Source of the DNA: Macrostomum lignano
Lineage: Eukaryota
Reading direction: 5' to 3'
DNA: 64,000 bases
Assembly: GCA_002269645.1 (NCBI GenBank)
Contig: NIVC01000735.1
Location: forward strand, 1 to 64,000
The stretch's first letter is position 1; each line of letters opens with the position of its first letter. The translations under genes and the position numbers were made by a program. The notes under the pieces are model-generated. The model did not search any database. It was not told where the DNA came from and saw only the letters and a list, made by a program, of their open reading frames with translations. Positions 1-20,109 of the stretch are shown here, piece after piece.

Positions 1-606
1 CACTACAAGTAATATCAATGTGTTTATAAGGCTGCATCATCGCCGCGTGCAGCAGCAAGGGAGACAGAGGAAGGCCATCCCAAATATGGCCAGCCAGGGC
101 GTGAATGACGGGTCGCTGATTCACAGGCGCGGCGGGGCAGTTGATGAACCCTCAGAAGCCAGGTTAGGCGCTTCTTAAGGGTAGCAGTTAATTTCTATTT
201 GGAGTAAACGGCGGAGTAACCACAGCTGCATTCAAGTCGTCAAATGACTCGTCAGCTAGAAAGTTATTTTTAGGTGGACTGGGGCAGCCGAACAGCTGCA
301 GCAGATGTCATTTGCTTTCGCTTGCAAAACACGGGCAATGTTTGAATTGGTGAGGTGGCGTCAGATTGAAGGGAACAGCGGGCGTGACGGCTTGAATTTC
401 GATGCCTAAAAGTACACACCTTGAACTATATTTACCTTGTATGATTTCAAAAAGATTTGAAAGGAATATTTTACCCGACCTTGGTTGGGCGCGAATAAGC
501 AACATACAGAAAAAAGGAAGGACAAGAGATTGAAGAAATATTGACACAGGGAGACTGACACACTCGACAAACGAGTGCGAAGCACAGGTAGCCAGACACT
601 CGCACA

Positions 607-925
607 CCAGACACACAGATCCACACAGACAGGCACAGCAGACACACGGATCCACACAGACAGGCACAGCAGACACACGGATCCACACAAACAGGCACAG
701 CAGACACACGATCCACACAGACAGGCACAGCAGACACACGGATCCACACAGACAGGCACAGCAGACACACGGATCCACACAGACAGGCACAGCAGACACA
801 CGGATCCACACAGACAGGCACAGCAGACACACAGATCCACACAGACAGGCACAGCAGACACACAGATCCACACAGACAGGCACAGCAGACACACGGATCC
901 ACACAGACAGGCACAGCAGACACGC
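607..925. repeat. 32-bp minisatellite
   Basis: (ggatccacacagacaggcacagcagacacac-)n. Confidence 0.9.
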
Positions 926-964: not shown

Positions 965-3900
965 CCGCATGGAGTCGCTGATCTCATCGCTGAGGTAGGC
1001 CTGCACCGACATGGCGGCCAGCAGCGGCAGCTCCAGCGTGTCGCCCCACGCAGCGCAAACAGAACTCCGCCGTCGTCATCTTCGTTGTCTGCCGCCGCGG
1101 AAACAGTCGAAGGCGGCCTGAGCGGCTTGAGGTTGTAGAGCTTCCGCCGGGAGCAGCTGGGCAGCAGGGACAGGCAGATCAGGTACAGCTGGGGGGGGGG
1201 GAGAGGGCGTTCGTGAGCCGGTCCGTGTCCACTGCAGCCATTTACAGATTGGTGGTTGCAACATTTAAAAGTCTAGATTTGTAATAATAATAATTGATTA
1301 CACCTGCCCCAATCGGGCCAGACCTGCAGCCGACAGCTCAGCCGCAGCTATTGCGCGGTGCATCTGAAGGCTGCGTACGGCTGTTCAGTCCATGGACTGG
1401 GAGGTCACCACACTCTCAATTACCCCAGCTAATGCTGGCACCCATTTTACAGCCGGGGTGAACTGAAGCAATGCAGAGTTAAGTATCCTGCTCAAGGACA
1501 CAGATTGTTTCAATGGGTTTCAGAATTGCCTGATTCTATAGAAGCGCTATTTCGAAGTCCTCGACCCATCGGCCTCACCTGCGCCCACGGCGAGGCAATC
1601 GGTACGGAGGCGGCGGCCGGGCAGCACTCGAGCGGCTCGCCGTCCGGCAACTCCAGAAAGGCGAGGCGGGCCGTTCTCGGCAGCCAAGGCGCCGGAATTC
1701 GGCCTCGCCGTAGCTCCAGCGGCAGCAGCCGACGCGGCGAATCTCAACGTCTTGCCGGCGGTAGAGGACAGCGGCGGCGGAGGTGGCGGCGGCGGAGGCG
1801 GCCGAATCGGCGTTGAGGTCGCGGAGGATTCGGCGGATTCGCTTCTCTCTGACGGCCTCCTCGCGGTCGGCGCCGACGCAGCTGAGGGATGCAGCAGCCG
1901 GCCGGAGCAGCCGTAGGCCAGCCGCGGCTTGGCGGGCTCGGCGGCCAGCGAAGCCACCAGGCGGGCGAGCGCGCGCGCGGTCACCGGCGATGAGCAGCGC
2001 GGCGGAGTCACCCAGCCTGGCGGCCAGGGTGAAGTGGCGGGCGAGGTCGAGGCCGCAGACCAGCTCGGGCCGGTAGTCTGGCACAATAAGCAGGCGGTCC
2101 CCGTAGCGGTCAACCCAGGTCACCTCGTGACGCAGGCCGGTGTCGCGGAAGAAGCTGAAGCCTTCGTAGCGCTCCGTGTCCCAGAAGTCCACGTCCAGGT
2201 GGAGGGTCTCCAGCAGGCACTGCCACTGCAGGAAGCTGCTGCGGGTGGTGCCGCGGCCCGTGACGAACAGCGCGTCGCCGGGCGGGTCGCGGACCACAAA
2301 GTAGGGCGCCACGCGCACCGTGTTGGAGCAGTACTCAACCAGCTTGCCGTGCTGTGAGGATGTAATTGACGCGAGTGGGAATATCCAATGCTCAGAATTA
2401 TGATTTATTTATAACCTGAAGGATAGTCCGACCTCTTTAACCACCTTTACGACCTCTTTAACTGTAATAGGGATGCAGACATCATTTCGTCAATCCCAAC
2501 ACTTGTAGACACAGGTGCAGACACCACATCCTCAATCCCAACACCTGTAGACACAGGTGCAGACACCACATCCTTAATCCCAACACTTGTAGACACAGGT
2601 GCAGACACCACATCCTCAATCCCAACACCTGTAGACACAGGTGCAGACACCACATCCTCAATCCCAACACCTGTAGACACAGGTGCAGACACCACATCCT
2701 CAATCCCAACACCTGTAGACACAGGTGCAGACACCACATCCTCAATCCCAACACCTGTAGACACAGGTGCAGACACCACATCCTCAATCCCAACACCTGT
2801 AGACACAGGTGCAGACACCACATCCTCAATCCCAACACCTGTAGACACAGGTGCAGACACCACATCCTCAATCCCAACACCTGTAGACACAGGTGCAGAC
2901 ACCATATCCTCAATCCCAACACCTGTAGACACGGGTGCAGACACCAAATCCTCAATCCCAACACCTGTAGACACAGGTGCAGACACCAAATCCTCAATCC
3001 CAACACCTGTAGACACAGGTGCAGACACCATATCCTTAATCCCAACACTGTAGACACAGGTGCAGACACCACATCCTCATAACCCATAAAAAACCCGCAC
3101 TCACCATGTACAGCTCCACCTGGCACAGCACGTGATCAAACAGCTCCGCCTTGTCCTCCAGCAGCATGGGGAAGCGAACTACCAGACTGGACTTGGCCGG
3201 CAGATTGCGGATGCCAACGTACACGGTGTCCTTGAGGTCTGGGTGGAACTTCAGCACGTAGCCGGGGTCGCCGAGGTCGCCACCGCTGCCGGTCGGTTCG
3301 GCGGCTGCCACCAGCATGCGCCGGTCCAGGCGGATGCGCAGCTCGACCTCGCAGGAGCAGGTGGTGGTGGCCACGGCGGCGTCTTCGGGTGCGACAAAAT
3401 TGAAGGCCGACTGGTTGGTCACCTGTTGCGGGATGGTGAAGAAGATGCCGATTAAAGGATTCAATTCAAACTAGAGATAAGAATGTAATGACGGCATAAT
3501 AAAAGAACTGAAAGCAATGCATCTATATAGGGAGCTCCCACACGGATAGAATGAGCTCACACACGGATAGAATGAGCTCACACACGGATAGAATGAGCTC
3601 ACACACGAGTAGAATGAGCTCACACACAGATAGAATGAGCTCACACACGGATAGAATGAGCTCACACACGGATAGAATGAGCTCACACACGGATAGAATG
3701 AGCTCACACACGGGTAGAATGAGATCACACACAGATAGAATGAGCTCACACACGGGTAGAATGAGCTCACACACGAGTAGAATGAGCTCACACACGGGTA
3801 GAATGAGCTCACACACGGATAGAATGAGCTCACACACGGATAGAATGAGCTCACACACGAGTAGAGTGAACCCAGCAGCAGCAGCAGCAGCTCACCTCAA

Positions 3901-6900
3901 TATTAACGCAGTACTGCTCGCCGCGGCCCATCTGCGGCGGCAGGTTGACGGCAGACAGAACCACCGGGTGCCGGATTCGAACTTTGCGAGTGCAGCCGAC
4001 CTGAGTGCGCATTGGGGCAATCGGGGCGTGACGAGGGGAGGCTGAGATGAGGCGGATAAGCAAAACTGAAAGTGGATTCTGTGAAGGCTGGGGAGCCCCT
4101 GGTGATCATAAACACACGATAACAGCGGAATAAATTCTGGGAAAATGTAGCAAGTATGGAGCCAACGAAACACTTAAAGAAAGGAAAAGGATTTTAGATC
4201 TCTTCTCTCCTAACTCTGCGATCGCAGGAGAGGTGTAGGGAATGCAGGGGAGAGGTGTAGGGAATGCAGGGGAGAGGTGTAGGGAATGCAGGGGAGAGGT
4301 GTAGGGAATGCAGGGGAGAGGTGTAGGGAATGCAGGGGAGAGGTGTAGGGAATGCAGGGAAGAGGTATAGGGAATGCAGGGGAGAGGTGTAGGGAATGCA
4401 GGGGAGAGGTGTAGGGAATGCAGGGAAGAGGTGTAGGGAATGCAGGGAGAGATGAAGGGAATGCAGGGGAGAGGTGTAGGGAATGCATGGAAGCAGTCGG
4501 CCTGGCCACTCACCCCCGTGAACTGCCTGCCAACCAGGCTGACTGTCGGCCGGATTTCCGCTTCGCCCTCGTAGCGCACCGGCTCGTTCGGAGTTGGCAC
4601 GTCAGACAGGCGGCCGTGGAACAGGGCCGTCACTGTGTACTGCTCGTTCGGCTCCAGCTGCGGGTGCGACAGAGGGATGGGCTGCGGCTTTTGAAAATAC
4701 CTTAGATGGACGACTTAGGTCAGGTCAGGCTGGGTGTCAGTAGGTTTAGGTCACGTCAGACTTGTTGACAGAAGGTTTAGGTCAGGTCAGACTGGGTGTC
4801 CGGAGAATTAGGTCAGGCCAGGCTGGGTGTCAGAAGGTTTAGCTCAGGCCAGGCTGGGTGTCAGAAGGTTTAGGTCAGGCCAGGCTGGGTGTCAGAAGGT
4901 TTAGGTCAGGCCAGGCTGGGTGTCAGAAGGTTTAGGTCAGGCCAGGCTGGATGTCAGAAGGTTTAGGTCAGGCCAGGCTGGGTGTCAGAAGGTTTAGGTC
5001 AGGCCAGGCTGGGTGACTGAAAGTTTAGGTCAGGCCAGGCTGGGTGACTGAAAGTTTAGGTCAGGCCAGGCTGGGTGACTGAAAGTTTAGGTCAGGCCAG
5101 ACTGGGTGTCAGAAGGTTTAGGTCAGGCCAGGCTGGGTGTCAGAAGGTTTAGGTCAGGCCAGGCTGGGTGTCAGAAGGTTTAGGTCAGGCCAGGCTGGGT
5201 GACTGAAAGTTTAGGTCAGGCCAGGCTGGGTGACTGAAAGTTTAGGTCAGGCCAGGCTAGGTGACTGAAAGTTTAGGTCAGGTCAGGCTGGGTGTCAGAA
5301 GGTTTAGGTCAGAATGCCTGAAGTGTCAGAATACTGGGGTCAGGACAGACTGGCACAGAATGCTGTGATCAGAGCCCAGTGATGAATATTGAATGAAGTC
5401 ATGAGCTCTAGACGCTTCTGGATAAAAAGACATCTATGATAAGTTGAGGGTTATTTAGAAGCGAATTCATTAATTGCAGCCGCGCCCCGACCTGCACCAT
5501 TAGAGTGCAGCAGCAACAAGCGCCACCCCACTGCCTGATCCAAAGCAGGCGCAGAAGCTCTGTGGCACACAGGAGGACCGAAGACCCACCAAGCAGAGCT
5601 GCAAGACGGCCAGACTGCAACCCGCAGGCCAAGCGACAACTGCGTACTGGGAAAGCACAAGCCGGGGGCTGCTGCCAATCAGCGAGGGTACCGAAACTGC
5701 ATCTGCGCAGAGAGACAGCCCAGCCGGTGAGAGTGCATGCCCAGGTAATTTCATAGATAATTAGACAGGAAAAATCATTTAGAAGATTAAAATGCCAGGG
5801 CAATTAACTGGGGGGGGGCAGAGCAGAGCTAATTTTGATGCCCAGCCGCAGAGAGTGTTCATGCGTACAGTATTCTGCAGGAGCCAGCGGAATGTGCAAA
5901 CTGCCTCAGCGCCGGATGCCCACAGAACCCTCCTACCCTCCTACAAGTACACGAGCCGAGGTCAGCCGCTCACCTTCGGCAAGGTGAAGGTCTCCGACTT
6001 GCGCATCGCCAGGCTGTCGGTGGAGGCGAAGCTCAGAACGGCGCCGCAGGGCAGCGCCATGCCGCCGCGGTTGCGCAGGCGGACGTTGGTGACCACCACC
6101 TGGGCGCTGGGGAAAAAGAACTCCGGGTCCTGCGACAGCGAGGCCACTTCGTACTGCTCAACAACAACGTCGTAACGACGCTGGGTGCGGCAGGTGACCT
6201 CGCCTGTGGACGGGTCGATCACGGACCAGATAACGTAGCCCGGCTTGCCCGGCTGCCCGCCCGGGCCCGCCAGTCCGGCCACGCCCGCCTTGCCCTGCTG
6301 GCGCGCACCCCGGCAGAGCCGGGACAGCCGTGCCGCAGGCGGCCGCCGCCCGCCAAGTTCGCGTCCGAGTCGGTCCGGCCAACTCCGCCCAGGCCCGGCA
6401 CGCCGCCACCGCCACCTCCGCCGCCGAAGCCGGGCCGGCCGCCGACGCCAGCGGCGCCGCCTGAGCCGGGTGGGCCGAGGTCGCCACCGCTGCCGGAGTC
6501 ACCGCCGCGCAGGTCGGCCTCGACCAGCACAAGCAGGCAGGGATTGTCGGCGGTGATCAGCAGGCGGCCGCCGCTGCCGCCGTTGCCGCCACGGCCGCCG
6601 CAGCCGCCGTTGCCGCCCTGTAATCAATAACAAAGGATTCGATGCGACTCCAGCGGCACTCAAATTTACGATATCAACTGACACCCCAAAATCGGCATTA
6701 AAAGTTCAGCATTAAAATTAAAGATGTTTTTCTTGAATTCTGTTGAAAGCTCTTTGGGTCAGGGCTCAGAATTGGCTTACAGAGATCTTATTTTATTTAA
6801 CTGGATGCATGGAAGAGGCTGCAGGTGCCTCAATAAATAATTAAACGATCACTGCAGGAGGGCTGCGGGCCTACAGGTGTCTCAAGAATGAATGAAGCTC

Positions 6901-9900
6901 CACATGCTCGATGCCTACAGGTGTCTCAAGAATGAATGAAGCTCCACATGCTCGATGCCTACAGGTGTCTCAAGAATGAATGAAGCTCCACATACTCGAT
7001 GCCTACAGGTGTCTCAAGAATGAATGAAGCTCCACATACTCGATGCCTACAGGTGTCTCAAGAATGAATGAAGCTCCACATACTCGATGCCTACAGGTGT
7101 CTCAAGAATGAATGAAGCTCCACATACTCGATGCCTACAGGTGTCTCAAGAATGAATGAAGCTCCACATACTCGATGCCTACAGGTGTCTCAAGAATGAA
7201 TGAAGCTCCACATACTCGATGCCTACAGGTGTCTCAAGAATGAATGAAGCTCCACATGCTCGATGCCTACAGGTGTCTCAAGAATGAATGAAGCTCCACA
7301 TGCTCGATGCCTACAGGTGTCTCAAGAATGAATGAAGCTCCACATGCTCGATGCCTACAGGTGTCTCAAGAATGAATGAAGCTCCACATACTCGATGCCT
7401 ACAGGTGTCTCAAGAATGAATGAAGCTCCACATACTCGATGCCTACAGGTGTCTCAAGAATGAATGAAGCTCCACATGCTCGATGCCTACAGGTGTCTCA
7501 AGAATGAATGAAGCTCCACATACTCGATGCCTACAGGTGTCTCAAGAATGAATGAAGCTCCACATACTCGATGCCTACAGGTGTCTCAAGAATGAATGAA
7601 GCTCCACATACTCGATGCCTACAGGTGTCTCAAGAATGAATGAAGCTCCACATACTCGATGCCTACAGGTGTCTCAAGAATGAATGAAGCTCCACATACT
7701 CGATGCCTACAGGTGTCTCAAGAATGAATGAAGCTCCACATACTCGATGCCTACAGGTGTCTCAAGAATGAATGAAGCTCCACATACTCGATGCCTACAG
7801 GTGTCTCAAGAATGAAGCCGCCACACAAAACTGAAGTTAAAGTTGGAGCACAGCTGAATTTGCGCCTCGCTCGCAAGTGCTGGAAAACGAAAGAATTGAT
7901 AAGAAATACACAGCAGGATGCTCAAAAAGTGCTCAACTTGTTCAATTTTCATTCGTTTATTTTTCGCACACCCAGACATACTCAGACAGAAAGTCAACGA
8001 ACTTTAACTGACTAGCGCAGGTGGCAGCCAAAGCACAAGCATACATTATAGTTAATATAGTCACTAAACAGAAGAGAAACGGTCGATAGCGGTGGTCCCG
8101 GGCTCGAATTCTGATGTCTGACAAAACCGGCAAAGCGACACAAGAAGCCAGCTTGGGAGATTAGCAGATATCAAAGTCTATTTGCTAGAAAAAAGTACAT
8201 TGTGTAAAGCAGCGCAGGAGCGTCAGAGAAAGAGGGCGGTTTCAATTAATTATTAATTAGCTAATTAGCGCACAATTATTTCGCCGTGAGAAAAATAAAC
8301 ACCAGCGCCACGCGATAGCAAAGCCGCTGTTAATATTGCATATATGGGTTTATTAGTAAGTGATTAGTAATAATAATATAATAGAGTGAAGCGCAGGCTG
8401 TAAACTGTTGGGTATAAATATGCCAGGTCTGCCGCCATCCTTGGTTTATTATTGTACTGGGCTGGGCATTCAGATCGCCAACAGGCGCAGACAGGAACTG
8501 GTCGGCTTTGCTCTCCCTGTTCTTAGTAGCGGGCCAGTGAGAGCTTTGACTGCAAGCGCTCATAATAGACTGATCATAGCAGCACTGGAGTCAGGTAGTT
8601 CAGCGAGGTCGGGTCAGGATGATCCAGGTCAGGTCAGGTCGAGCCGGGTCAGGTCCGAAGGTCAGGCCAGGTCAGTAGACCTGCGTGAACTCCGCTGCTG
8701 CTGGGTGTTGGCCGACAGATGGCGCCCGCGGGAGAAGCCGCCACCTCCGCCGCCGCCACTGCCGCCGACAGTCAGCGGCTTCGGCGACACGGGCGTGGAG
8801 GCCCGCAGCGTGGCGTTCCGGTTGGCGCTGAGGCTGCGAGCACCAGCCTCGGGCGGCCGCACCGCCAGCCGGCTGACACGGCCGACCGTCCCTCGCTGCT
8901 CGGTGAGGCTGTACTGCTGCTGCTGCTGCTGCACCTGAGTGGCGATCACCCTGCTGCCGCTTCCGAGGTCGTGGATGCCACGGCCAATCGGCTGCAGCGT
9001 GGTGGTCTCGACCTCCTCCGTCACCTGCGGCGGCTCGTGCGTCATGGTGCGCTGGCTGTAGCGGAACTCGAACGGCGGCTCGGAGCTGAAGCGACGGTTC
9101 AGCTCTGCCGAGTCCTGGTGCTCGCTGGCGATGTACAGGTGCTGCTGATTCTGCGGCCGGCCGCCGTGGTGCTGATGGTGCTGGTGGTGATGCGACTGGC
9201 GCGTCTGCTGCTGCTGCTGAACTGAAGTCTGGCGCCGGATCGACTCCATGGCGTCGTTAAGCGACCGCTCGAGGTGCTCCAGGCGGGCGTCGAACCCGGG
9301 GTTGCTGTGCTGGCGGCCTCGGAACTGCTGGTGCTGGCGGTGGTAGGAGTGGTGCTGCTGGTGCACCGGCTGGTCGCGGTGGCTACGCTGACGCCGGAAG
9401 CCGGCGCCGTAGTCCAGCTGCTGGCTGTACGACCGGGGCATCGGTGCCGGGCCGGAGTTCCAGTCGTCGTAGCGGTTGACCTGCACCCGGGAGTATGGCA
9501 GCTGATGGTGCTGGTGCTGGTGCTGGTGCTGGTGCTGGTGTTGGCTCTGGGAGGTAAGCCGCCGCTCCAGCAGAAGAATGCCATCGTCGAGGCCGCCAGT
9601 GGCGCTGCTGACGAAGCCGCTTGAAGTGGCTGCCGCGGCGCCGGAGGCGGGCGGGCCGGCAGCTGCCGTCTGTACAGTGTGCATCGTGCGGTGGTGGCTG
9701 CGGGTGGCCACAGGCGGCTGGCTGCTGCTGCTCCGGCTGACGTATCGGCGCACGGAGGCCACCTGGCACTGCTCCCGCTGGTCCATGGGGCCGTGCAGGC
9801 GGCTGGCGCTGTCCAGGTAGTACAGCCGGTCGCTGCGGTACCTGAATGTTACCTGGGCATGACTGGTCCAGGTAGCCGGGCCTCGCTCCACAGTCAGCAG

Positions 9901-12900
9901 GCTGGCGAACCGCTCACTCTGCTGCTGGTGCTGATGCTGCTGCTGAAGCTGCTGCTGCAGTTGCTGCTGCTGCTGAAGAAGAAGCTGCTGCCGTTGAAGC
10001 AGAAGACGCCGCTCGAGCATCTCGGCCGAGTCGGTGGAGACGCCGCTGCTGACGCCAGACGCGGCTGACAGAGCATCATCGTCGACGCTGCCGGAGTCGC
10101 CGGTGCCGCCGGTGCTGGTGCCGGAGGCGGCGTCGGAGCCAACGCTGTGCAGCAGCAGGTGCTGCTGGTTGCCGCCCAGCTGCTCCGTCAGCACGGCGTT
10201 CTTCTCCACTGAGCGCAGGCCGGAGCCCTCGGCCGCCGACAACGTGGTGGTGACGGTGCCGCCGAATGAAGCGATGTTGCTGTCCGTCTTGTCGTGCTGG
10301 TGATGCGGATGCACCAGGTGGTGCTGCAGCTTAGTAGTCATTGTTATTCCCTAACGGTTTTTTTACCTGCGAGCCCTCCGCGCCGAGCAGGGCAGACACA
10401 GAGCGAGGCTGGGCAAGCTTGGCGCGGGGCCGGCCTGAACTGCCCCCGAAAATAAATGGCCGCCAGCGTCGGAGAGACGCTGAAGAGAGGGGGGGGGTTG
10501 GCTGGCGGAGTGCACGACCCCCCCCTCCAGCGCGCCAATAACCGAGACGACGAGAGGCCCGGGCTGGAGAGCGAATGCGGCACCCTCTGCAGGCCTCCGT
10601 GCGCTGGCGAACGCCAAGACTGGAACTTCGAAGCTGCAATATCGAGCGACAGTCCGGGGGAGGGGAGGAAGGAGGGAGCGGGGGAGAGACAGGCGCAAGG
10701 CGCAGGGAGGAGGCATTCCATTTTAGCTCGTAAAAGCTTGAAGCGAGCACCGTCCCGGGGCAGCGCGCAGTATAGGGTTCGACGGTAGGCTCGAGTGCCG
10801 GTGGGGGGGGGACAATGGCGAAAACACGGGCGCGGGCGGGATATGCGGGGGGAGCGGCTTGCACTGCACAGGCAGAGGCTGGGAGAAGTTGCTATCGTTT
10901 AAGCTTAACCCAAGACCCGCAAGCCGATGCTGCCTGGGGGGGGGGGTATAACTGAGGCACAGGGTTCGGGTTTCTCGCCCGCTGCATGGGCCGTCAGTGG
11001 TGGGCATCGCAGCCAGAAGACGCCTGACAACTGGCCTCTCCTTATCCGCATCCCAGCTGTGCTGCTGCATAACTTGACACGGAAGATTTCCGCAGCAGAA
11101 GTTGGAGGGAGGGGGGCGATATGAAAAAAGCCAACCAGTTCCCCTTGTAGTGACAGAATTGAAGCTCGTGCACCTACTCATGGGAGGCCCTAGCAGAGCT
11201 GAACTTCAATGCAACGTGCGCCAGCCACCGTGGCGGCGAAACTGGCATCAAGCCAGGAGACGATGCTGACCAGGCTTCAAATTTATTTCGATTGAAGTAA
11301 TTTTAGTACAGCATGCCTAAAGCAGACTACTCACAAGTAGCCAAGTAGGCATTGTAGGCAAATCTGCTGCTGTAAGTAATGTGGCAAGCAGATGTGTCGA
11401 TTGGAAAGGAAGTCGCTGAACTGCCGCTCAATTTGCTATCAAACAGGCAACACATGACTGCCGGCCATCAAAGGGTCGGCCGCGCCTTCACTCCCGGCTG
11501 GCGGGCTAATTCAATGCAAACAGTAATCTCTCTGCTTGACTCGGAAAGTCGTCCGTCATCGGGTCGGGTGGCCGCGGAGTGGGTGGCAGAGCGGGAGTGA
11601 CTCAGCTGCCGCATCATGCAGCCACGCAGTTCACGAATAATAAAGCAAACAGTCGGCAGGGGCATTCGGCAGGCCGCTGACAGCTCCCCTGCTGCTGGAA
11701 TGTCGGCCTGATCAGGCCCGCCAGCCCGCACTCTGCTGCCAGTGACGCCGCTTCTGGCTTCTTCTTTCGGCTAAAATTGAGTGTCTCGCTCAGTGCAATG
11801 ACCCCCTACTTGGGTACATTCCAGTGCTTGCTTGCTTTCCTCCTCATTTAACTCCTCTGCATCTTCTTCCCGGCAAAGCGGTCCAGCATCTTCACTCACC
11901 GTTCCGCCGTTGCCGCCGCAGCCGCCGTCTCCGCCGCGGTCGCCCTCGCCGGAGCGGCTCTCCTCGCCTCGGCCGCCGGGTCCGCCGCCGCCGCCTCGTC
12001 CACCGTGGCCGCCGCAACCGCCGGCACCGCCCCGGCCGCCGCGGCCGCCGTGCAAGTCGGCGAAGATGATGGCGTCGCGGCCCATGTCCACGCAGTCCTC
12101 CTCCAGGCCGCCGCCGGACACGCGAAGCGAGGCGGGGTTGCCCGACAGCAGCAGGTGGAAGGAGTGCCCGTCCTCTCCCGCCTCGCCGTCCTCGCCGTTC
12201 AGGCCGCGGCCGCCGTCGCCGCCGCGACCGCCGTCTTCGCCGCGACCACCGGCTGCAGAGTTTGGATGAGTGGAATGAGACAGCGGGCCTGAATGCTCTA
12301 AAATGCTCCATCAGCCACTTGGAACTCCAACTGGCATGGGGTAGCAGCCTCCGAGCAACTGGGATTCCAGTCTATTGACCCGCGTGCACAGCAGGCAGCT
12401 CACATTGCAGGAGCAGCTGCCGACCAAATTTTTGAATTATTTAACAGCACAGCAATATTCGCCAAATATTCCAGGAATTGCCTTGGATAAACTCGGGTTC
12501 CGGGATGTGAGAGAACAGATGGGGGATGAAGGCAGGGGGGAATACGAGGGTAAATAAGGCTGCTGGAATTCTCCCAGACCAGATTCTCGATACTTCTGCG
12601 GTAGCATTCTGAACTTGGCTTCTAGGAAAGCAGATTAAACCCCTCGCATCTCACTTTGAGCAGTTTGAATGCGCGGGATGCGAGCTAGGATGAAGTGTAA
12701 ATGAGAGCCCGGCCTGCTTAACTTGAGAAGGGCTTATTAAAGATTGTGTAGCAGAGAAGAGAAACGGCTTCATTCCCGGCGCGCACAATGGCATTTTGAG
12801 CGCTGCTAAGAAGCCACCCACGCGCGCGAGATTAAATAAGCGGGCGCGGCAACAACAAAGGCACCGGAGGGGATTTTGGCGGCCTGAGCCAAACACGGCC

Positions 12901-12992
12901 AGCAGGGCTGCACAGCCGCAAATTGGCCTCATGGGCCAGTTTTGGGGATTCATGGGGCAAATCAGCGGGCAGCGGATTCATTTCTTTCTGTC

Positions 12993-13038
<46 letters not shown>

Positions 13039-14042
13039 GCCTGCCTATTTTAGCTGGGCAGCATTGCGGGGATATAGATGAAGGATGAAGCTCTGCGGTG
13101 GAGTCTGGGGCTGGGCCAGATGCGGCCCGGGCAGCCGGGCTGAGTGGCGGGCGGAAGGCGTGAGCTGGTGGGGATGCGGTGGCAAATTTGTGCTCAGTGC
13201 TGATAATCCAATGTGAGCAATGCCAGGGAAGCTGGGAGATGAAGCCCTCCCTTCCAGTGTTTCGCACAATCAATGGCCGCGGGGTGAGCAGCGCAGAGAG
13301 AAACACTGGGGGGAGGCAGCGAAAGACTCGAAAATGCCCCCCTCTCTCTGAAAAAGTACAAAGTAGCCGGCCGGCGGGAGTAGGGAGGTGGGGGAGGGCA
13401 AGGCCGCCGAGAACCGGGGCCGGTTAAACGCCCGGGCCAAGTGGCCTCCCCGCCGCTGCCTGCCTCTCTCGGCCCTCCCTTCCTCTGGCGCAATTCCCAT
13501 GGGAAGCGGAGCAGCGGGGCCTCCCAGAGTGGCAGAAGTATATTATTTTTATTCAGGCGCTCCCCCAGCCTGCTCGAGGCCTCTGAGAGTCCATCAGGCT
13601 GAGCTGCTGCGGTTCTAGGAACTCTCCTAACCCCCCGGTGATCCCCACCTGGCCCCGCACTTCCCAACCCATTCCAAACCCCAATATTAATCTACAGCGC
13701 AATTCGGCTGAACTCAGCGGCGAGCTTATCTGTCTCGAAAATGAAAAAAAAGGGCAATTAGTCCCAGCGCGAGGGCCAGCAGAAGCAGATTAGTCTGAGA
13801 TTGCTGCAGCCTCCGCGTCTCTAAAAGCATTATTTTTAACAATAGACTGTCTCGCCATCAAAAAACTAATTAATTCTGAAGCAGACACAGGCAATGCTAA
13901 AAAGTGCAACGTGGGGACGCCCACGCAGCTCACCGATGCAGGCCGGCATGCCCTCCTCGCCTGGGTGGCCGTCCCGACCGTCTTCGCCCTTCAGCCCGTC
14001 GACTCCGTTCAGGCCGCAGGATGAGATCACAATGAGCTGGGG
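965..14042 (-). CDS. Spliced gene (3' part): Gly-rich collagen-like/GGX region followed by a large uncharacterised globular region; has apparent 1-nt frameshifts; 3' end uncertain
   Basis: Phase-compatible GT-AG exons: 13934-14042 (PQLIVISSCGLNGVDGLKGEDGRDG), 11900-12252 (GGX repeats), 5974-6617, 4514-4681, 3896-4000, 3105-3422, 1579-2351 (LDVDFWDTERYEGF) and 965-1188. A terminal exon may lie at 361-405. Frameshifts are inferred near 6301, 1975/1890, 1685 and 1050. Confidence 0.75.
1282..1510 (-). mobile_element. CORE-like SINE fragment, copy 1
   Basis: The reverse complement reads gtgtccttgagcaggatacttaac...ctgtaaaatggg (MIR/CORE-like) and ends in an (ATT)n tail. It matches 46243-46469. Confidence 0.65.
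2489..3078. repeat. 42-bp intronic minisatellite, ~14 copies
   Basis: (gtagacacaggtgcagacaccacatcctcaatcccaacacct)n. Confidence 0.95.
3537..3864. repeat. 22-bp intronic minisatellite
   Basis: (gatagaatgagctcacacacgg)n. Confidence 0.95.
4228..4487. repeat. 22-bp intronic minisatellite
   Basis: (agggaatgcaggggagaggtgt)n. Confidence 0.95.
4724..5312. repeat. 31-bp intronic minisatellite
   Basis: (ggtttaggtcaggccaggctgggtgtcagaa)n. Confidence 0.95.
6870..7816. repeat. 44-bp intronic minisatellite, ~21 copies
   Basis: (cctacaggtgtctcaagaatgaatgaagctccacatRctcgatg)n; near-identical units, no spacers. Confidence 0.95.
8662..10341 (-). CDS. 559-aa Q/H/S/G-rich low-complexity ORF nested on the same strand in an intron of the Gly-rich gene
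   Basis: Uninterrupted ATG-to-TGA ORF with the G/C-ending codons seen in the real exons here. It has polyQ and (HQ)n tracts. An AATAAA lies on the minus strand at 8445-8450. Confidence 0.65.
   Translation of the reverse strand: MTTKLQHHLVHPHHQHDKTDSNIASFGGTVTTTLSAAEGSGLRSVEKNAVLTEQLGGNQQHLLLHSVGSDAASGTSTGGTGDSGSVDDDALSAASGVSSGVSTDSAEMLERRLLLQRQQLLLQQQQQLQQQLQQQHQHQQQSERFASLLTVERGPATWTSHAQVTFRYRSDRLYYLDSASRLHGPMDQREQCQVASVRRYVSRSSSSQPPVATRSHHRTMHTVQTAAAGPPASGAAAATSSGFVSSATGGLDDGILLLERRLTSQSQHQHQHQHQHQHHQLPYSRVQVNRYDDWNSGPAPMPRSYSQQLDYGAGFRRQRSHRDQPVHQQHHSYHRQHQQFRGRQHSNPGFDARLEHLERSLNDAMESIRRQTSVQQQQQTRQSHHHQHHQHHGGRPQNQQHLYIASEHQDSAELNRRFSSEPPFEFRYSQRTMTHEPPQVTEEVETTTLQPIGRGIHDLGSGSRVIATQVQQQQQQYSLTEQRGTVGRVSRLAVRPPEAGARSLSANRNATLRASTPVSPKPLTVGGSGGGGGGGFSRGRHLSANTQQQRSSRRSTDLA
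12995..13036. repeat. (CT)n microsatellite
   Basis: About 20 CT units. Confidence 0.9.
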
Positions 14043-14120
14043 CTGAAAAAGGGGGAAATGATCGATTTAATACTCGTATGTGGCGATGCTTTCAAAGCTT
14101 TTTCCACTGTTGGTCTCACA

Positions 14121-14362
14121 CAGCTAGGTGGCGGTCTTTTGGTCGGACACAGCTAGGTGGCAGTCTTTTGGTCGGACACAGCTAGGTGGTCTTTTGGTCG
14201 GACACAGCTAGGTGGTCTTTTGGTCGGACACAGCTAGGTGGTCTTTTGGTCGGACACATCTAGGTGGTCTTTTGTCGGACACAGCTAGGTGGCGGTCTTT
14301 TGGCCGGACACAACTAAGTGGCTGTCTTTTGGTCGGACACAGCCGTCTTTTGGCCGGTCTCA
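14121..14362. repeat. Degenerate ~26-29-bp minisatellite
   Basis: (cttttggtcggacacagctaggtggt)n. Confidence 0.85.
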
Positions 14363-15111
14363 GCTACGGTCTTTGGTTGGGACAGGAGATACGAGTAAAA
14401 CAGAGAGATCGGACATGCGGCCGCGCAGAGGAGCGGACAGAGGTGAGCTGAGGTCAACGGTGGGAAAACCGACACAGGAAATGAAGCAACTTGAAGTGCC
14501 AGAGCTCAAGAGGTTCCCATGGGAATTAATAAAATAAAAATCCCAGTTAAGCCGTCTTATCCCGCTAATGTCCCAGGTAAACTGCTCTGATTATGCCTTC
14601 TCCCCTGGCGCAATCCAGGAAGCGGATTAGGGACAGCGCAGCCTGGCAGTGGTCTGATCCCCAGCCCTGCCCCGGTCCAAAAGTGCAGGCGAACGCAGGG
14701 CTGCAGGCGCGGCCGCACAATGCTGCTAAAAATAGCCACCGACCGAACCAGGCTGGCAGACCGCAGTCGCGGAATTTCGCTGACTTTTTTGGCTCGCTTC
14801 CAACCGGGGATCGGGGAGGCATTGTTTGTTAACGAGGCTGGGCTCTCACTGCGCCGCTACAACTAAGGCCCAGACTCCCCATCACATTCAAAGCTTCATC
14901 GAGAAGAGCTTCTGTCTAAAATGGGATACTTTAAAAAAATTCCCCTGCTCTTTTCCCATGCCAATAAATCAATGGCTGAATACATCAGCCTCTGCTCTCT
15001 CTGCATCGCAGATTCCCGGAGTTCAGCCTCATCATGAATTGAGATGCGCCAGCAAAAAATCTCCGATTTCAAAAGTACAAAAAACCACTCAACAATTCAC
15101 CCAAATTCACG

Positions 15112-15450
15112 ACACTGCTCACCTAAATTCAGTGACACTGCTCACCTAAATTCAGTGACACTGCTCACCTAAATTCAGTGACACTGCTCACCTAAATTCA
15201 GTGACACTGCTCACCCAAATTCAGTGACACTGCTCACCTAAATTCAGTGACACTGCTCACCCAAATTCAGTGACACTGCTCACCCAAATTCAGTGACACT
15301 GCTCACCCAAATTCAGTGACACTGCTCACCCAAATTCAGTGACACTGCTCACCCAAATTCAGTGACACTGCTCACCCAAATTCAGTGACACTGCTCACCC
15401 AAATTCAGTGACACTGCTCACCCAAATTCAGTGACACTGCTCACCCAAAT
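15112..15450. repeat. 23-bp minisatellite
   Basis: (cacccaaattcagtgacactgct)n. Confidence 0.95.
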
Positions 15451-16344
15451 CCAGGTTTACAAAAAGTTAAAATTTTCCTCCCCAACGAATCACAGCTTGA
15501 AAACAGAGCAGTGAGAGAGGCGGCTTGGGCAGCAAGATGAAGAACGCGCGAGCCTGTATCAGGCAACTGTGCCAGTCCCCGTGTATCCGCCCCTCCCCCT
15601 ACCCTACTCACGCTGAGCAGCAGTCGCCCCAGATTCGACCCAGTTGGCGAGACAGCGGGGGGGGGGGGCAGGGGAGGCCGGGGCGGACAGATCTGCCCAG
15701 CCCAGACCGCCCCGGCCTCTTTCACGCTTGGCAGGCAGGCAGCCCGGTGCTTTTCCCACGGCAGCGCGAGTTCAGGGCTGCCCTCCCCTTAACTAAGCTG
15801 CTTTTATCCCTGGGATTCGCTGCTGTCCGGCTATTTTAGCCTCAGCTTACTCCATTTCCCCATTCTCTCTGCCTCTATCAGCTGCTCAGCAGCTGAGCTT
15901 ATCTGGCAAGCCGGTGAATGCAGCGCCATCATCCTCACTCACTGCAACGGACTTCTTCAGCGGATCTCTGCTAAAAGTGCTTAAAAACGAAGAGAAAAGA
16001 AGAGCAGAGGCAGGCTATGAAAGACTGGCAGATCTTTGAGAAGATGGAGCCCTCAGTGCTATTTGCAGCGATGGGCGGGTATTAACAGTCCCCTGAAGGA
16101 CTGATTTTTTATTAGAGGCAATATTCACAACCGGCAAGAGGCATTACTGCCCATTCCGCTGACTCCCCTGAGCAGCCACACAGGAGTGTACAGCGGCCCT
16201 AACTTTGTTTATCCTTAAGTATTTAGTAGGTACACTTCACTGTGCCTTGGCTCTCAAGGGCGCTACAATACTAGGCTACGGCCCCTTAGAATGAAAGGGT
16301 AGGTAGCCGCTGAAAATCAGTGGGAGGCCTCCCCAAAGCCTCAC

Positions 16345-19300
16345 CTTAGAGCGAGCGGCCTCAGCCATTTTCTCGGCCTCCAGCACGCTGAGATTCTCCG
16401 GGGACAGCAGAATGTCGGCCGTGGAGCTCTGCCGGCCCTCCGGCTCGCGGTAGATGACGTACTTGGTGGGCTGCTGGCACGGCTGCTGCAGCTGGTCGTT
16501 GGCGGTGGCCCGGTCGGCACCGCGGGGGTCCTCGTAAAACACGGCCTTGTTGGCGTGGTCCACGAACACCGCCCGGTCCAGGTTGAAGTCCCACAGGTGC
16601 TGCACGTGCTCAGGCAGGCCGAATTCCTCGCCCTCGCCAAGGTTCAGCGGCCAGCGGACCGGCGGCCCGTGCGGCGGCAAGAACGTGTCATCCTCCTGGC
16701 GGCGGCGCCTTCGGCTCTGCGAGGCGCCGTCTCCGGCAGCCAGCAGGGGTGGCGGCGTGTGTTCCTGCTGGCGGAACTGCCGGCCGGGTGGGGCGGCGAC
16801 AAGGCATAATTAGTCAGGTGCTCAGACTGAGCCTCATCACCTCCAGGTGCTCAGACTGAGCCTCATACCCCAGTTGCTAGACTGAGCCCCATCCCCCAGG
16901 TGCTCAGACTAAGCCTCATCCCCTTCAGGTGCTCAGTCCATCCCCCAAGTGCTCATCATTCAATTATCAGCCCAGCGCCCTTTCGAGCACTCACCACAGC
17001 GGGCACCTGGCAGGACTTCATCTGAGTCATGATGGACTCATAGCTTGGCGGCTGCTGGCTCTGGCCGGTAGGTTGATAGCGGGAACTCGGCCGGCCGGTG
17101 TCGGAGCCGCGGGATTCGCTGCTGTGCGCCTCGTGAGACAGCTGGGCGTCCAGCATGCTGGGGTGGCACTTGTCCCAGCGGCCCTGGAACTCCTGCCGCT
17201 GGCGTTCGCGATGCAAATGTCATTTTGCGGTTTAAACAGGTGACAGTGGAATTATTCCAATGGAGAAGCGGCCACTCCCAAAATATCCCTCAGGAAGGGC
17301 GGAGAGGCGAATTCCCCGCATTGAGGAAGCGGCCACTCCCAAAATATTCCTCAGGAAGGGCGGAGAGGCGAATTCCCCGCATTGAGGAAGCGGCCACTCC
17401 CAAAATATCCCTCAGGAAGGGCGGAGAGGCGAATTCCCCGCATTGAGGAAGCGGCCACTCCCAAAATATCCCTCAGGAAGGGCGGAAAGGCGAATTCCCC
17501 GCATTGAGGAAGCGGCCACTCCCAAAATATCCCTCAGGAAGGGCGGAGAGGCGAATTCCCCGCACTGAGGAAGCGGCCACTCCCAAAATATCCCTCAGGA
17601 AGGGCGGAGAGGCGAATTCCCCGCATTGAGGAAGCGGCCACTCCCAAAATATTCCTCAGGAAGGGCGGAGAGGCGAATTCCCCGCATTGAGGAAGCGGCC
17701 ATATCTAAAAAAATCCCCAAGTGCCGATCAAACCGCCTCGAGACGAGCAGGGAGTAGTCGGTCTTTCTGCCAACGCGAAGCCACTTGAATAAAAGCGGGA
17801 AGAAGGGCCGGTATGGGAATCCGACCCCGGCCCGATATGTGCAGCAGGCAGGCTATTGAGGAATCGCCTGCCTGCCTGCCCGGGAGTCAGGCAGAAGAGA
17901 GCAGGGCGCATTGAAGAGCCACAGAAATTCCGGCGGGCCCGGGCAGCCCCGGACCCTCCCCCCGCCGCTAACAAAGTGTCGCTCGAGGGGTCACCCGGAC
18001 ACGGCGGCAGAGCGGATCGCCACCAGCGGAGCGGCCGGTGTTTGTTTACGACCGGCCCGCGCCGGCCAGCAGCGCCTCCGCCGGCAGTCCGCAACAGCAG
18101 ATTTTTTAATTAGCCAAGCCGGCGGCTCGCGAATAAGCGAACTATAAATTATTGTTGGAAAGTGGGCGGCGCGGCCGGGCGTTGGCGAATCGCTTAAGAC
18201 GATGGGGCGAGGGGTCGGCGTTTCGGACAGACAGGGAAAACATGCCCCCCCACCGGTGACCCCCGTGAAGGACGCCCCCGTCTAGCAGCACTTGAGGCAG
18301 GTTGGCAGGCAGGGAGGCTCCGGCCGAGCCCCGCTGGAAGCGAGCCAAAGGCAACAGAAGTGTGCGGCCTGGTGCACCAGAGAGAGAACAGCAGAAGCTT
18401 TGGACAAGAAGAAATTTACTGAAACTGTTTGATTGAAGTGAGTCACCAGAGATTGAATTTAAAATAAGGGAATTACCAGAGTTGAGTAAAATTAATCAAG
18501 GGTATTGCAAGCCTCTGGTGAATTAACACCTTTAAAACTTGGGGAATTACAAGCTTCGGCTGAATTACAACTAAGGGAATCACAAGCTTCGGCTGAATTA
18601 AAACTAAGGGAATTACAAGCTTCGGCTGAAGTAAAACTAAGGGAATTACAAGCTTCGGCTGAATTAAAACTAAGGGAATTATAAGCTTCGGCTGAATTAA
18701 AACTAAGGGAATTACAAGCTTCGGCTGAATTAAAACTAAGGGAATCACAAGCTTCGGGTCAATTCAAACCAAGGGACTATCAGCAGGTGAAGGCAAGCAA
18801 AAAGAAATTCCCAGTTCGAGTCGGCGGGCATTGAGCGGGCAAGCCAAATCGGGAATGAATCTGCTGAACAGCAGTGTAAGAGCAAACCTCGTTGCCATGG
18901 GAGACAAAGTCGAGGCCGGGCCGCGGCTCGGGGCAGGTCGGGTCGTCAAACAGGCGTCTGAGCACCAGCATCCAGCGGTACATCTGGTGCACCGAGACCG
19001 CGCGGAATCGCTGCCACTTGGCACCGCCGCCGCCGATGACCCCCGGCTGTTGCGACTCGGCGCCGCTGCACTCCGAGTCGGCGATAAAGCGGACGGCGAA
19101 CACCAGCCGGTCCTTCAGGCGGCCAGCGGGGCGCTTCGAGTTGGAGCTGCGTCCGTCACCGCCGCCGCCAGTCAGCTCCGTCCACGAGCGCACCTGGTTG
19201 AGTTAAAGACCGGGTCTGAGATTTAAAACTGCCTGTGCACCACCTGTCAAGAGGGGCTGAGCAGTGGAGCGGTAGCTCGTGACATGCCCGACTCTCTCGC

Positions 19301-19990
19301 TCTGGGTTGCCTGGGTTCGATTCCGAGAGCGGTCACATTAATCTGGGGCTCCCGAACAGTCATACGATTCATACTGATGAGGGTCAACGCCTCCTCTGGC
19401 CCTTGTTTTTGTAATATACCGGTAACGCCTGGCCGCTGTGCGTGCTCAGGGGTCAGCAAGATGTGCAGAACTGCTTTTCAACTCAACTTTCGCATAAATT
19501 TATGACGGAACCCAACAGCCACCCTGCGACAAACCAACTAAGCTGCCCCAGTTAATAATAGACTAACCGAGCGCACCTGAGCTCGCTGAAACTGCTGACT
19601 GAAGACGCCGCCTCGGCTCTCCAGCACGTAGCCGGCGTCATCCTTCAGCGCCCAGAGCTCCAGGCTCTCCTTCTTCCAGACGCGGCGCACTCTGGACAGT
19701 CTGTACAGCTCCTCGCTCAGCAGGCACTGGTTCTCCGAGGCCTCCACGGCTGGCAGAGCGGCCGCCTCCAACCCGAGGACTTCGGGCTCGTCGCCGAGGC
19801 CGACGTCATCCATCAGGAGGCAGCCGTCTCCAATGACACCGCCGCTGCCACCGGCGCTATCGAGAATGTCAAAGTGGTCGACGACGCCCGCGCCGAGGCC
19901 GCTGCTGACACCGCCAACTCCGAAGGTGGTGGGCAGTAGCGGGCTGCTGGCTGAGCCGCCCGCTGCCCCCGGTGCGAGCCAGTCGGACAT
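16345..19990 (-). CDS. Spliced gene (5' part): PH-domain and atypical WW-domain protein; may splice in frame to the Gly-rich exons at 14042
   Basis: Phase-0 exons: 19577-19990 (start Met uncertain), 18888-19193 (KWQRFRAVSVHQMYRWMLVLRRL, PH C-terminal helix pattern), ~16995-17198 (PPSY) and 16345-~16776 (LPEHVQHLWDFNLDRAVFVDHANKAVFYEDPR, WW-like). The donor at 16345 and the acceptor at 14042 are both phase 0. Confidence 0.65.
17266..17700. repeat. 61-bp minisatellite, ~7 copies
   Basis: (gaagcggccactcccaaaatatccctcaggaagggcggagaggcgaattccccgcattgag)n. Confidence 0.95.
18538..18757. repeat. 33-bp minisatellite
   Basis: (caagcttcggctgaattaaaactaagggaatta)n. Confidence 0.9.
19253..19337 (+). 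mobile_element. tRNA-like SINE head or tRNA pseudogene
   Basis: GGGGCTGAGCAG start, A-box-like segment and B-box GGTTCGATTCC; similar to 56968-57045; stems pair poorly. Confidence 0.4.
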
Positions 19991-20109
19991 AGCTTGCTCA
20001 CTGCTGCTCCTGGCCTTCCTGGGTTGTCTCAATAGAGATGAAGTTCGCAGAAGAGCTAGACTTGGATTTGTTATACTACTAAAGGGAGACAGCTAGCAGG
20101 GTCTGCGCA

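Follow-up and report, generated by a model that had tools for sequence, protein, structure and literature searches.

A Macrostomum lignano gene of the uncharacterised DUF7932 family encodes a glycine-rich module with a predicted polyproline II-type fold

We analysed a window of 64,000 nt from the flatworm Macrostomum lignano (assembly GCA_002269645.1, contig NIVC01000735.1, positions 1 to 64,000 of the forward strand) and found on its minus strand a protein-coding gene of at least 12 exons that runs from at least position 19990 down past position 1. The locus is a member of DUF7932, a family that is catalogued yet uncharacterised. We judge it rather likely that the glycine-rich (Gly) module of this protein is a folded bundle of the polyproline II/polyglycine II (PPII/PGII) helix type and that the protein serves as a cytosolic scaffold or platform. 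The section 965..14042, whose eight exons are called E1 to E8 in the order of transcription, had been described in a first-pass annotation as encoding Gly-X-Y (GXY) and then GGX tracts, strands and a non-repetitive region, and every string that it quoted was found on the minus strand.

DUF7932 (PF25560) was the only domain that Pfam recognised in the spliced window product and in its orthologues, and its function is unassigned, which bears out the earlier statement that the protein belongs to no standard animal family. The score was 38.0 bits (cut-off: 27 bits) over profile positions 4–129 of 130, compared with 29 bits for a single exon alone and 48–72 bits in orthologues. A word-indexed homologue search with the non-Gly region returned three M. 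lignano models only. With the same region as query, an exhaustive phmmer search of 1.84 billion representatives gave 227 proteins at E ≤ 1e-3 and 35 at E ≤ 1e-30. Most were 1200–1300 residues long with the match in the C-terminal half, and the matches reached 3e-66 and spanned query residues 1–396 or more. In all search queries, an X was placed at each break of the reading frame. A profile search yielded 227 clusters, ~40 of them full-length orthologues with DUF7932, whose gene is a single uninterrupted open reading frame (ORF) in the ENA, Logan and NCBI assemblies. The host of one full-length orthologue is eukaryotic, because split Cu2_monooxygen exons adjoin it on a 3.7-Mb contig.

An alignment of 21 sequences showed 29–34% identity, 49 invariant columns common to the window, invariant glycines and one order of modules. 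This order is an N-terminal domain, a Tyr-centred motif, a WW domain, the Gly module of ~280 residues, three immunoglobulin (Ig)-like sandwiches, an alpha/beta domain and a helical tail. The animal members include the sponge Oopsacas minuta (KAI6661803, P0013), the nemertean Lineus longissimus (XP_064649595, P0009) and the fluke Fasciola gigantica. Further eukaryotic members were found in the bdelloid rotifers Rotaria and Adineta, the fungus Cercophora scortea and the protist Kipferlia bialata. The bacterial members (Polyangiaceae, Labilithrix, Novipirellula including Novipirellula caenicola, and Rubripirellula) belong to Myxococcota and Planctomycetota, and a pattern scan of GTDB gave at least six loci in Polyangia, Pirellulaceae, Planctomycetota and Bdellovibrio metagenome-assembled genomes (MAGs). 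A fold search with the model of 14042..3896 identified a giant-virus relative, Terrestrivirus sp. A0A3G4ZNF8 (BFVD; 1137 residues, annotated as DUF7932 domain-containing), which matched over the Gly module and the sandwiches (E 3.6e-24, query TM-score 0.52). No further viral copies were found when IMG/VR was scanned with animal-type DUF7932 patterns.

The members from Oopsacas, Lineus, N. caenicola, Polyangiaceae and Terrestrivirus are homologous to the window gene over the entire core. The sponge and nemertean proteins also share its WW/PPxY N-terminus, and the bacterial and fungal members have the same core without this N-terminus. The window copy differs from its relatives in the residues at two strand ends (L/L) and in its frame disruptions. 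The Pfam model spans only the first sandwich, ~130 residues, and the Gly module and the remainder were previously undescribed. A literature search for DUF7932 returned no papers, and the PPII-bundle literature does not mention the family.

The Gly module comprises the first 280 residues of the product from E1 onward, and 38% of these residues are glycine. It contains GGX runs of 9 and 10 triplets, shorter GGX runs of 3, and GXY runs of 3 to 8. With glycine scored at every third residue, the window sequence parses as six runs of 7 to 14 triplets. Nearly all members have three anchor-delimited blocks with two period-3 Gly runs each (8/10, 10/11 and 14/7 triplets in the window), and the run length is 8–9 triplets in bacteria versus 11–13 in the animal-type clade. 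Among 12 relatives from bacteria, the fungus, a rotifer and the animal-type clade, 36 Gly positions were invariant, most of them being invariant or ≥90% conserved among 65 sequences as well, a regularity far beyond chance. Block lengths co-varied (Spearman 0.42–0.54, p ≤ 6e-4, not corrected for phylogeny), and insertions and deletions fell mostly in the linkers between Gly runs. The X of GGX was non-hydrophobic in 93% of the triplets, mainly D, N, R, S and P, and proline made up 10% of the X and Y positions of GXY. At the N-terminal end, the GXY runs are separated by only ~6 residues.

Two strand-plus-GG elements lie within the module, with the family consensus VLLVNCRGGxGG and LLMLVExDCxxGxxG. 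Both recur and are conserved in the family, so that the internal duplication noticed earlier was confirmed. The residue at the end of these clasp strands, two before GG, was cysteine in both elements (C/C) in 32 of the 65 members and leucine in both (L/L) only in the window copy, where the codons lie at ~11947 (FADLHGG) and ~6506 (EADLRGG) on the minus strand, corresponding to residues 103 and 190 of the E1–E5 product. The paired change from C/C to L/L hints that the two clasp positions touch.

Two side observations concern the module. The linkers between Gly segments are conserved in bacteria (GSDATRYSSG and SSYSWTETE.YTDS.G..QTRT..HSN at loci L002..L009; P0229, P0234, P0244), unlike those of the animal-type clade, which are variable. 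For the GGX part of the Gly-module profile (A9), the top PDB sequence match was a 780-residue chain (8zxl_X / 9ius) named 'spindlefibril' and 'axialfibril', with an E-value of 2e-19. Should this chain be a GGX fibril of known structure, it would lend itself to comparison with the module.

We modelled the E1–E5 product with AlphaFold2 (462 residues, 65-sequence alignment). The mean predicted local distance difference test score (pLDDT) was 88.5 and the predicted template modelling score (pTM) was 0.73. Residues 8–67, 103–171, 190–230 and 244–281, which form the four Gly stretches of the model, contained no helix or strand according to DSSP. Most 10-residue blocks of these stretches nevertheless had a pLDDT of 96–98, with dips to 89 at 131–140 and to 67 at 221–230. 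Strands were predicted between the stretches, at 3–7, 68–75, 78–83, 86–91, 98–102, 172–177 and 186–189, and confidence was low only in the linker 231–243 and in one loop. An ordered bundle is supported because the glycines are in register, X is polar, segment lengths co-vary and pLDDT is high without helix or strand. We infer from the model and the sequences that the Gly module is a folded domain, neither a collagen nor a disordered low-complexity tail.

The glycine content and the many R, D, N and S residues would also suit a low-complexity region that is intrinsically disordered, like RGG/FUS or silk-like sequences, and that has no fixed fold and only incidental beta-strands. The PDB profile matches of the module were purely compositional and the Gly part had no Foldseek match, as would be expected of such a region. 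However, its glycines would not be invariant in register from bacteria to animals, its segment lengths would not co-vary, and its indels would not fall mainly between the Gly runs. Disordered Gly-rich tails and isolated collagen-like runs are usually not modelled so confidently by AlphaFold2, and the pLDDT of such tails is normally low, whereas here it was ~96–98. We therefore regard disorder as an improbable explanation of the module.

Even less probable is a genuine collagen-like protein whose GXY runs trimerise as a triple helix, as in C1q or bacterial Scl-type proteins. Collagens did head the PDB sequence matches of the Gly-module profile, there are GXY runs of 8–10 triplets, and Pfam Collagen (PF01391) matched weakly (E about 6e-5). 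These matches reached 22.9–23.1 bits (E1: 23.1 bits), which is under the cut-off of 27.2. Proline occupies only 10% of X/Y positions, no GXY run exceeds about 10 triplets, and GGX, a repeat that does not form collagen, makes up two-thirds of the module. The ~6-residue gap between the N-terminal GXY runs suits an antiparallel hairpin, not parallel chains, and the monomer model already orders these runs at a pLDDT of 96–98. In addition, no signal peptide is evident, and the protein has a WW domain of cytosolic type.

A folded PPII/PGII-type bundle has precedents. (Pro/Ala-Gly-Gly)n sequences assemble as PPII sheets of two layers, and Gly-rich PPII bundles occur in nature (bioRxiv 10.1101/2023.11.25.568672). 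The known natural examples are few: snow-flea antifreezes, Obg, ALK/LTK, acetophenone carboxylase and a phage fibre tip (10.1101/2023.11.25.568672). In the arrangement that we propose for DUF7932, six length-matched segments of 7 to 14 triplets each, in the order GXY, GXY, GGX, GGX, GGX, GXY, would adopt PPII/PGII helices. These helices would pack laterally via their glycine faces, and the polar X residues would be directed to the outside. Two small beta elements, each ending in (C/L)xGG, would clasp the bundle. The sequence suggests that a layered bundle with GXY edge helices fits better than a full PGII honeycomb, because GGX is mixed with GXY and X is polar. The PGII bundle put forward by the first-pass annotation is supported in so far as AlphaFold2 predicts an ordered non-alpha, non-beta module and the glycines are in register.

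The region downstream of the Gly module had been called an unrecognised domain. It is indeed uncharacterised, but DUF7932 is the first of three Ig-like sandwiches in it, and an alpha/beta domain and then a helical tail come after these. The AlphaFold2 model of the C-terminal 621 residues had a mean pLDDT of 85.4. It contained three beta-sandwiches (residues 1–302), an alpha/beta domain (~315–440) with parallel-looking strands and the conserved motifs DVL..T and VDFWD, and then a 25-residue helix, beta-hairpins and more helices. Foldseek matched this model to generic tandem Ig-like arrays (integrin calf/thigh, transglutaminase barrels, complement MG domains). Of these, integrin calf/thigh domains and transglutaminase barrels are similar to the array of three sandwiches. 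The best PDB fold match of the DUF7932 sandwich was the FW (four-tryptophan) domain of NBR1 (4ole; E 1.5e-4, target TM-score 0.51). It has the same sandwich topology, with an identity of only 10–12%, a generic fold that permits no functional inference. No matches were obtained when the non-Gly region was searched against PDB sequences with phmmer, and the profile of the alpha/beta domain gave nothing significant against PDB.

The N-terminal part of the protein is encoded by four exons upstream of E1, two of them tentative. A family hidden Markov model (HMM) of the N-terminal region pointed to additional exons there, which were delimited by GT-AG borders. N1 (19577..19990, minus strand; tentative) starts with an ATG at 19990 (MSDWLAPG...QQFQRAQ), has an open frame and ends at the donor CAG/GTGCGC (a slash marks the splice border). 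It gave no significant match to the family HMM. It contains LYRLSRVRRVWKKESLEL, which is like the start of the N-terminal domain in the Lineus and Oopsacas orthologues, and it is a putative exon of the gene. N2 (18888..19193, minus strand; tentative) contains LVFAVRFIADSE and KWQRFRAVSVHQMYRWMLVLRRL, has GT-AG borders and carries the conserved N-terminal domain 'F.A..IV..R.FMA.LG', which reads F.A..IV..R.FMA.LG..G.GLF in the 21-sequence alignment; its HMM match was weak (E about 0.1) and colinear. N3 (16995..17198, minus strand; E 0.0045, colinear) contains QQPPSYESIMTQM and ends in a PPSY motif (QQPPSYES). The family conserves this Tyr-centred motif, and only some members, the window included, have it in the canonical (P/L)PxY form. 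N4 (16345..16776, minus strand) encodes 'DTFLPPHGPP', the WW domain GLPEHVQHLWDFNLDRAVFVDHANKAVFYEDPR and a linker with RSK at its end; its HMM match had an E-value of 5e-27.

The sequence ahead of the Gly module follows the conserved pattern 'RR...D.F.PP.GPP…GYG.EVGL…Q..WDP….FFLDH……DPR'. When a profile of the region 'GYG.EVGL…FFLDH…DPR' was compared with PDB, 56 of the 57 matches were WW domains, with E-values of 4.6e-10 for the multi-WW protein WWP1 and ~6e-5 for single NEDD4 WW chains. The Pfam WW model had no match in the window copy and matched one of 24 members (E 0.0038). We therefore class the N4 region as a WW domain of divergent type. Its closest known counterparts are the WW domains of NEDD4-family ligases (WWP1, ITCH, NEDD4L, Su(dx)), and its core 'FFLDH…F/Y.DPR' can be aligned to 'YFVDHNTRTTTFKDPR' of WWP1. 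Unlike in those domains, the second signature Trp is Tyr or Phe in the family (Tyr in the window, FYEDPR), and binding to PPxY is only predicted. The WW-containing N-terminal architecture is shared by the sponge protein P0013 and the nemertean protein P0009, the two named animal members that were aligned over their full length.

No signal peptide was obvious by eye in animal or bacterial members. The protein is most likely cytosolic, because of this result and because the animal form has a WW domain. We propose that the ancient core (Gly bundle, Ig array and alpha/beta domain) would carry the primary activity, binding or catalytic, with the Gly bundle as a rigid element that holds the Ig array and the alpha/beta domain. 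The animal-specific WW domain and PPxY motif may tie the protein to WW/PPxY networks, e.g. NEDD4-type ligases. Alternatively, WW and PPSY may bind each other in a fold-back autoregulation. The weakest step of our explanation comprises the cytosolic location, the action as a rigid scaffold or binding platform, the activity of the core and the WW/PPxY links. A more far-reaching version is possible but doubtful: the Gly module would be an undescribed ancient PPII/PGII domain with six length-matched helices of ~25–40 residues clasped by the two beta elements, conserved from Myxococcota and Planctomycetota to sponges and flatworms, the largest natural PPII bundle known, and a rigid rod or ruler in a cytosolic machine that came later under animal WW/PPxY control.

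Several results speak against a cytosolic scaffold with a Gly-helix bundle. Foldseek matches for the E1–E5 model were to beta-sandwiches only, and the known PGII proteins (snow-flea antifreeze, ALK/LTK, Obg, gp38) were not among the top 50 matches listed. Compared with PDB sequences, the Gly-module profile found collagens and artificial Gly linkers, which are compositional matches. Straight uninterrupted runs of 8 to 14 triplets would be 75–130 Å long, exceeding known PGII helices, and the real topology of the module may differ from six straight helices. The bacterial gene neighbourhoods at four loci had no common partner, and no PADLOC or NCBIfam model matched a bacterial, fungal or animal-type member. 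The exons N1 and N2, moreover, are tentative ones. A PH-like N-terminal domain was also considered and dropped: the family profile of the N-terminus retrieved none from PDB, where unrelated proteins gave the best E-value (0.23), and Pfam PH did not match the orthologues. Finally, the window copy has five frame disruptions and so is possibly a pseudogene.

These disruptions, which agree with the frameshifts suspected earlier, are single-base breaks relative to the conserved frame. One lies in E3 (6302/6301), three lie in E7 (~1973–1970, 1885/1884 and 1682/1681) and one lies in E8 (1050/1049), all within G+C-rich runs. The shifts at ~1973 and 1885 offset each other, so that 28 conserved residues are replaced and the frame stays open; between them, the frame that matches the family (AYGCSGRLLHP vs consensus xYxGxHLxxP) differs from the raw open frame. 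Because the breaks are in G+C-rich runs and the sister copies are broken elsewhere, they suggest long-read consensus errors, and they are probably errors of the assembly rather than signs of decay.

If the window copy were instead a decaying pseudogene, one of several duplicates in a polyploid-like genome that does not make the protein, five disruptions in ~4 kb of coding sequence would be expected, as would the fact that three of them reach stop codons within ~30 codons. The public M. lignano models P0001–P0004 are likewise fragmentary or frame-scrambled, each at different sites. We nevertheless consider decay unlikely. The conserved frame is back immediately after each shift, there are no other stops, and the copy retains every family-invariant residue. 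The shifts lie where two adjacent G or C bases have been read as one, and in a (CG)n tract, as is typical of long-read consensus errors. In addition, the sister copy P0001, which is 99% identical to the window product over 610 residues, is open across three of the break points (~6302, 1682 and 1050).

The UniProt names of P0002, P0003 and P0004 (A0A1I8…), 'Ig-like domain-containing protein' and 'Protein kinase domain-containing protein', are ill-suited to the sequences, which mix frames and intronic ORFs. The names probably derive from mis-merged gene models. The public M. lignano models of the DUF7932 gene are fragments or chimeras, and their automatic names are not to be trusted.

The distribution of the family is patchy, as had been surmised, and comprises Myxococcota, Planctomycetota, a Bdellovibrio MAG, Cercophora, Kipferlia, Terrestrivirus, rotifers and a few animal phyla. 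Such a pattern would fit a recent horizontal transfer to Macrostomum from a bacterium, a fungus or a giant virus. We found this origin very unlikely for the flatworm copy. The gene has 11 spliceosomal introns within the window, and its WW/PPxY N-terminal extension is common to flatworm, sponge and nemertean, whereas bacterial and fungal members are without it. In a neighbour-joining tree (no bootstrap values), the window copy was basal in the WW-bearing clade, with rotifers, fungus and bacteria outside, and neighboured P0208, which closely resembles the sponge protein P0013. The horizontal origin mooted by the first-pass annotation is not supported, given this position, the introns and the shared N-terminus. 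The data agree better with a gene that animals have had for long and have often lost than with a recent transfer; at greater depth, transfers between bacteria, protists, fungi and giant viruses are possible.

By stop-to-stop translation and inspection of the junctions, we resolved 965..14042 on the minus strand into eight exons with canonical GT-AG borders and compatible phases. Its limits are exactly the splice donor of E8 and the splice acceptor of E1. The first-pass annotation was correct in that these exons are real, but it missed the upstream exons with PPSY and WW: the gene exceeds this section by the four exons N1 to N4, and every junction of the gene model is GT-AG, including theirs. 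The window portion of the gene encodes 1353 residues. The C-terminal ~117 residues of P0001 had no match in the window, and they are placed beyond its left edge for this reason. The exons are colinear with intronless orthologues of ~1250 residues.

E1 (13934..14042), like all the following exons on the minus strand, encodes the strand PQLIVIS and then GXY triplets of Gly segment 1, including GLNGVDGLKGEDGRDGHPGEEG. Its acceptor is TTTTTCAG/ and its donor is G/GTGAGC, in phase 1. E2 (11900..12252) continues with the remainder of Gly segments 1–2, a four-strand beta element (FHLLLSGN, SLRVSG, LEEDCV, AIIFA), GGX segment 3, a linker and the start of GGX segment 4, and carries HSFHLLLSG...AIIFADLHGGRGGRGG. 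E3 (5974..6617) comprises the remainder of GGX segment 4, the strand/turn RLLITADNPCLLVLVEAD, GGX segment 5, the low-confidence linker, GXY segment 6 and the first half of DUF7932. It carries RLLITADNP...LVEADLRGGDSG, YDVVVEQY and VRLRNRGGMALP, together with its one-base frame break. E4 (4514..4687; GT-AG, colinear with orthologues) spans the boundary at which Ig-like domain 1 (DUF7932) ends and domain 2 begins, E5 (3896..4000) encodes Ig-like domain 2/3 (VGCTRKVRIRHPVVL…CVNIE), and E6 (3105..3422) encodes Ig-like domain 3 (…AELFDHVLCQVELYM), with AlphaFold2 strands up to residue 302. The alpha/beta domain (DALFVT…VDFWD…LLIV…ALLIA), the long helix and the beta-hairpins are encoded by E7 (1579..2351), in which VRVAPYF and LDVDFWDTERY are present. 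E8 (965..1188; LYLICLSLLP…SDEISDSMR) is the last exon in the window.

A Gln/His-rich ORF of 559 residues with an ATG start (8662..10341, minus strand) lies inside the 5.3-kb intron between E2 and E3, on the same strand as the gene, and had no Pfam match. The UniProt model P0004 joins it to E3. We rejected it as an exon, since it breaks Gly segment 4 and the length fits the family only with direct splicing of E2 to E3. The ORF could represent either a gene nested in the intron or an alternative first exon. Nearly every intron contains minisatellites (periods of 21–61 nt, 4–21 copies, 86–99% match), which produce long spurious ORFs on either strand. They lie at 602..923, 2474..3079, 3532..3859, 4227..4487, 4715..5312, 6869..7816, 14110..14343, 15097..15454, 16815..16936, 17265..17701 and 18532..18776. 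Directly upstream of the proposed ATG at 19990, the G+C content falls to 0.31 (20001..22000), compared with 0.52–0.62 on both sides.

Taken together, these results define the full architecture of a family that was catalogued only as a 130-residue DUF, and they show that its members occur in bacteria and in a giant virus, a fungus, a protist and animal phyla that are scattered. What makes the family interesting is its predicted Gly-helix bundle, which deserves structural work. If the prediction is true, it would be the seventh natural Gly-rich PPII bundle, much larger than the others, evolutionarily widespread and part of an intracellular multidomain protein. It would widen the known uses of a third kind of regular protein architecture and offer a new natural template for protein design. 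M. lignano is amenable to RNA interference and thus a tractable animal model for the function of DUF7932.

Among known Gly-rich systems, the collagen triple helix (PF01391) is alike in that GXY runs of 8–10 triplets flank the GGX arrays. Unlike collagen, the Gly module is below the Pfam threshold and Pro-poor, its protein is without an obvious signal peptide, its runs are hairpin-like, and the prediction shows order already in the monomer. The snow-flea antifreeze protein and the Gly-rich domain of ALK/LTK are like the window in their period-three GGX/poly-Gly sequences with polar X residues facing outward (10.1101/2023.11.25.568672). As in their PPII bundles, the Gly module is predicted to be ordered, with neither helix nor strand. 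PDB searches with phmmer and with profiles returned neither of them, and neither was listed among the top 50 matches of Foldseek. In contrast to both, the window protein is probably intracellular, its segments are much longer (7–14 triplets) and its geometry is a predicted one. It also mixes GXY edge segments with GGX segments and has beta-hairpin clasps inside the module.

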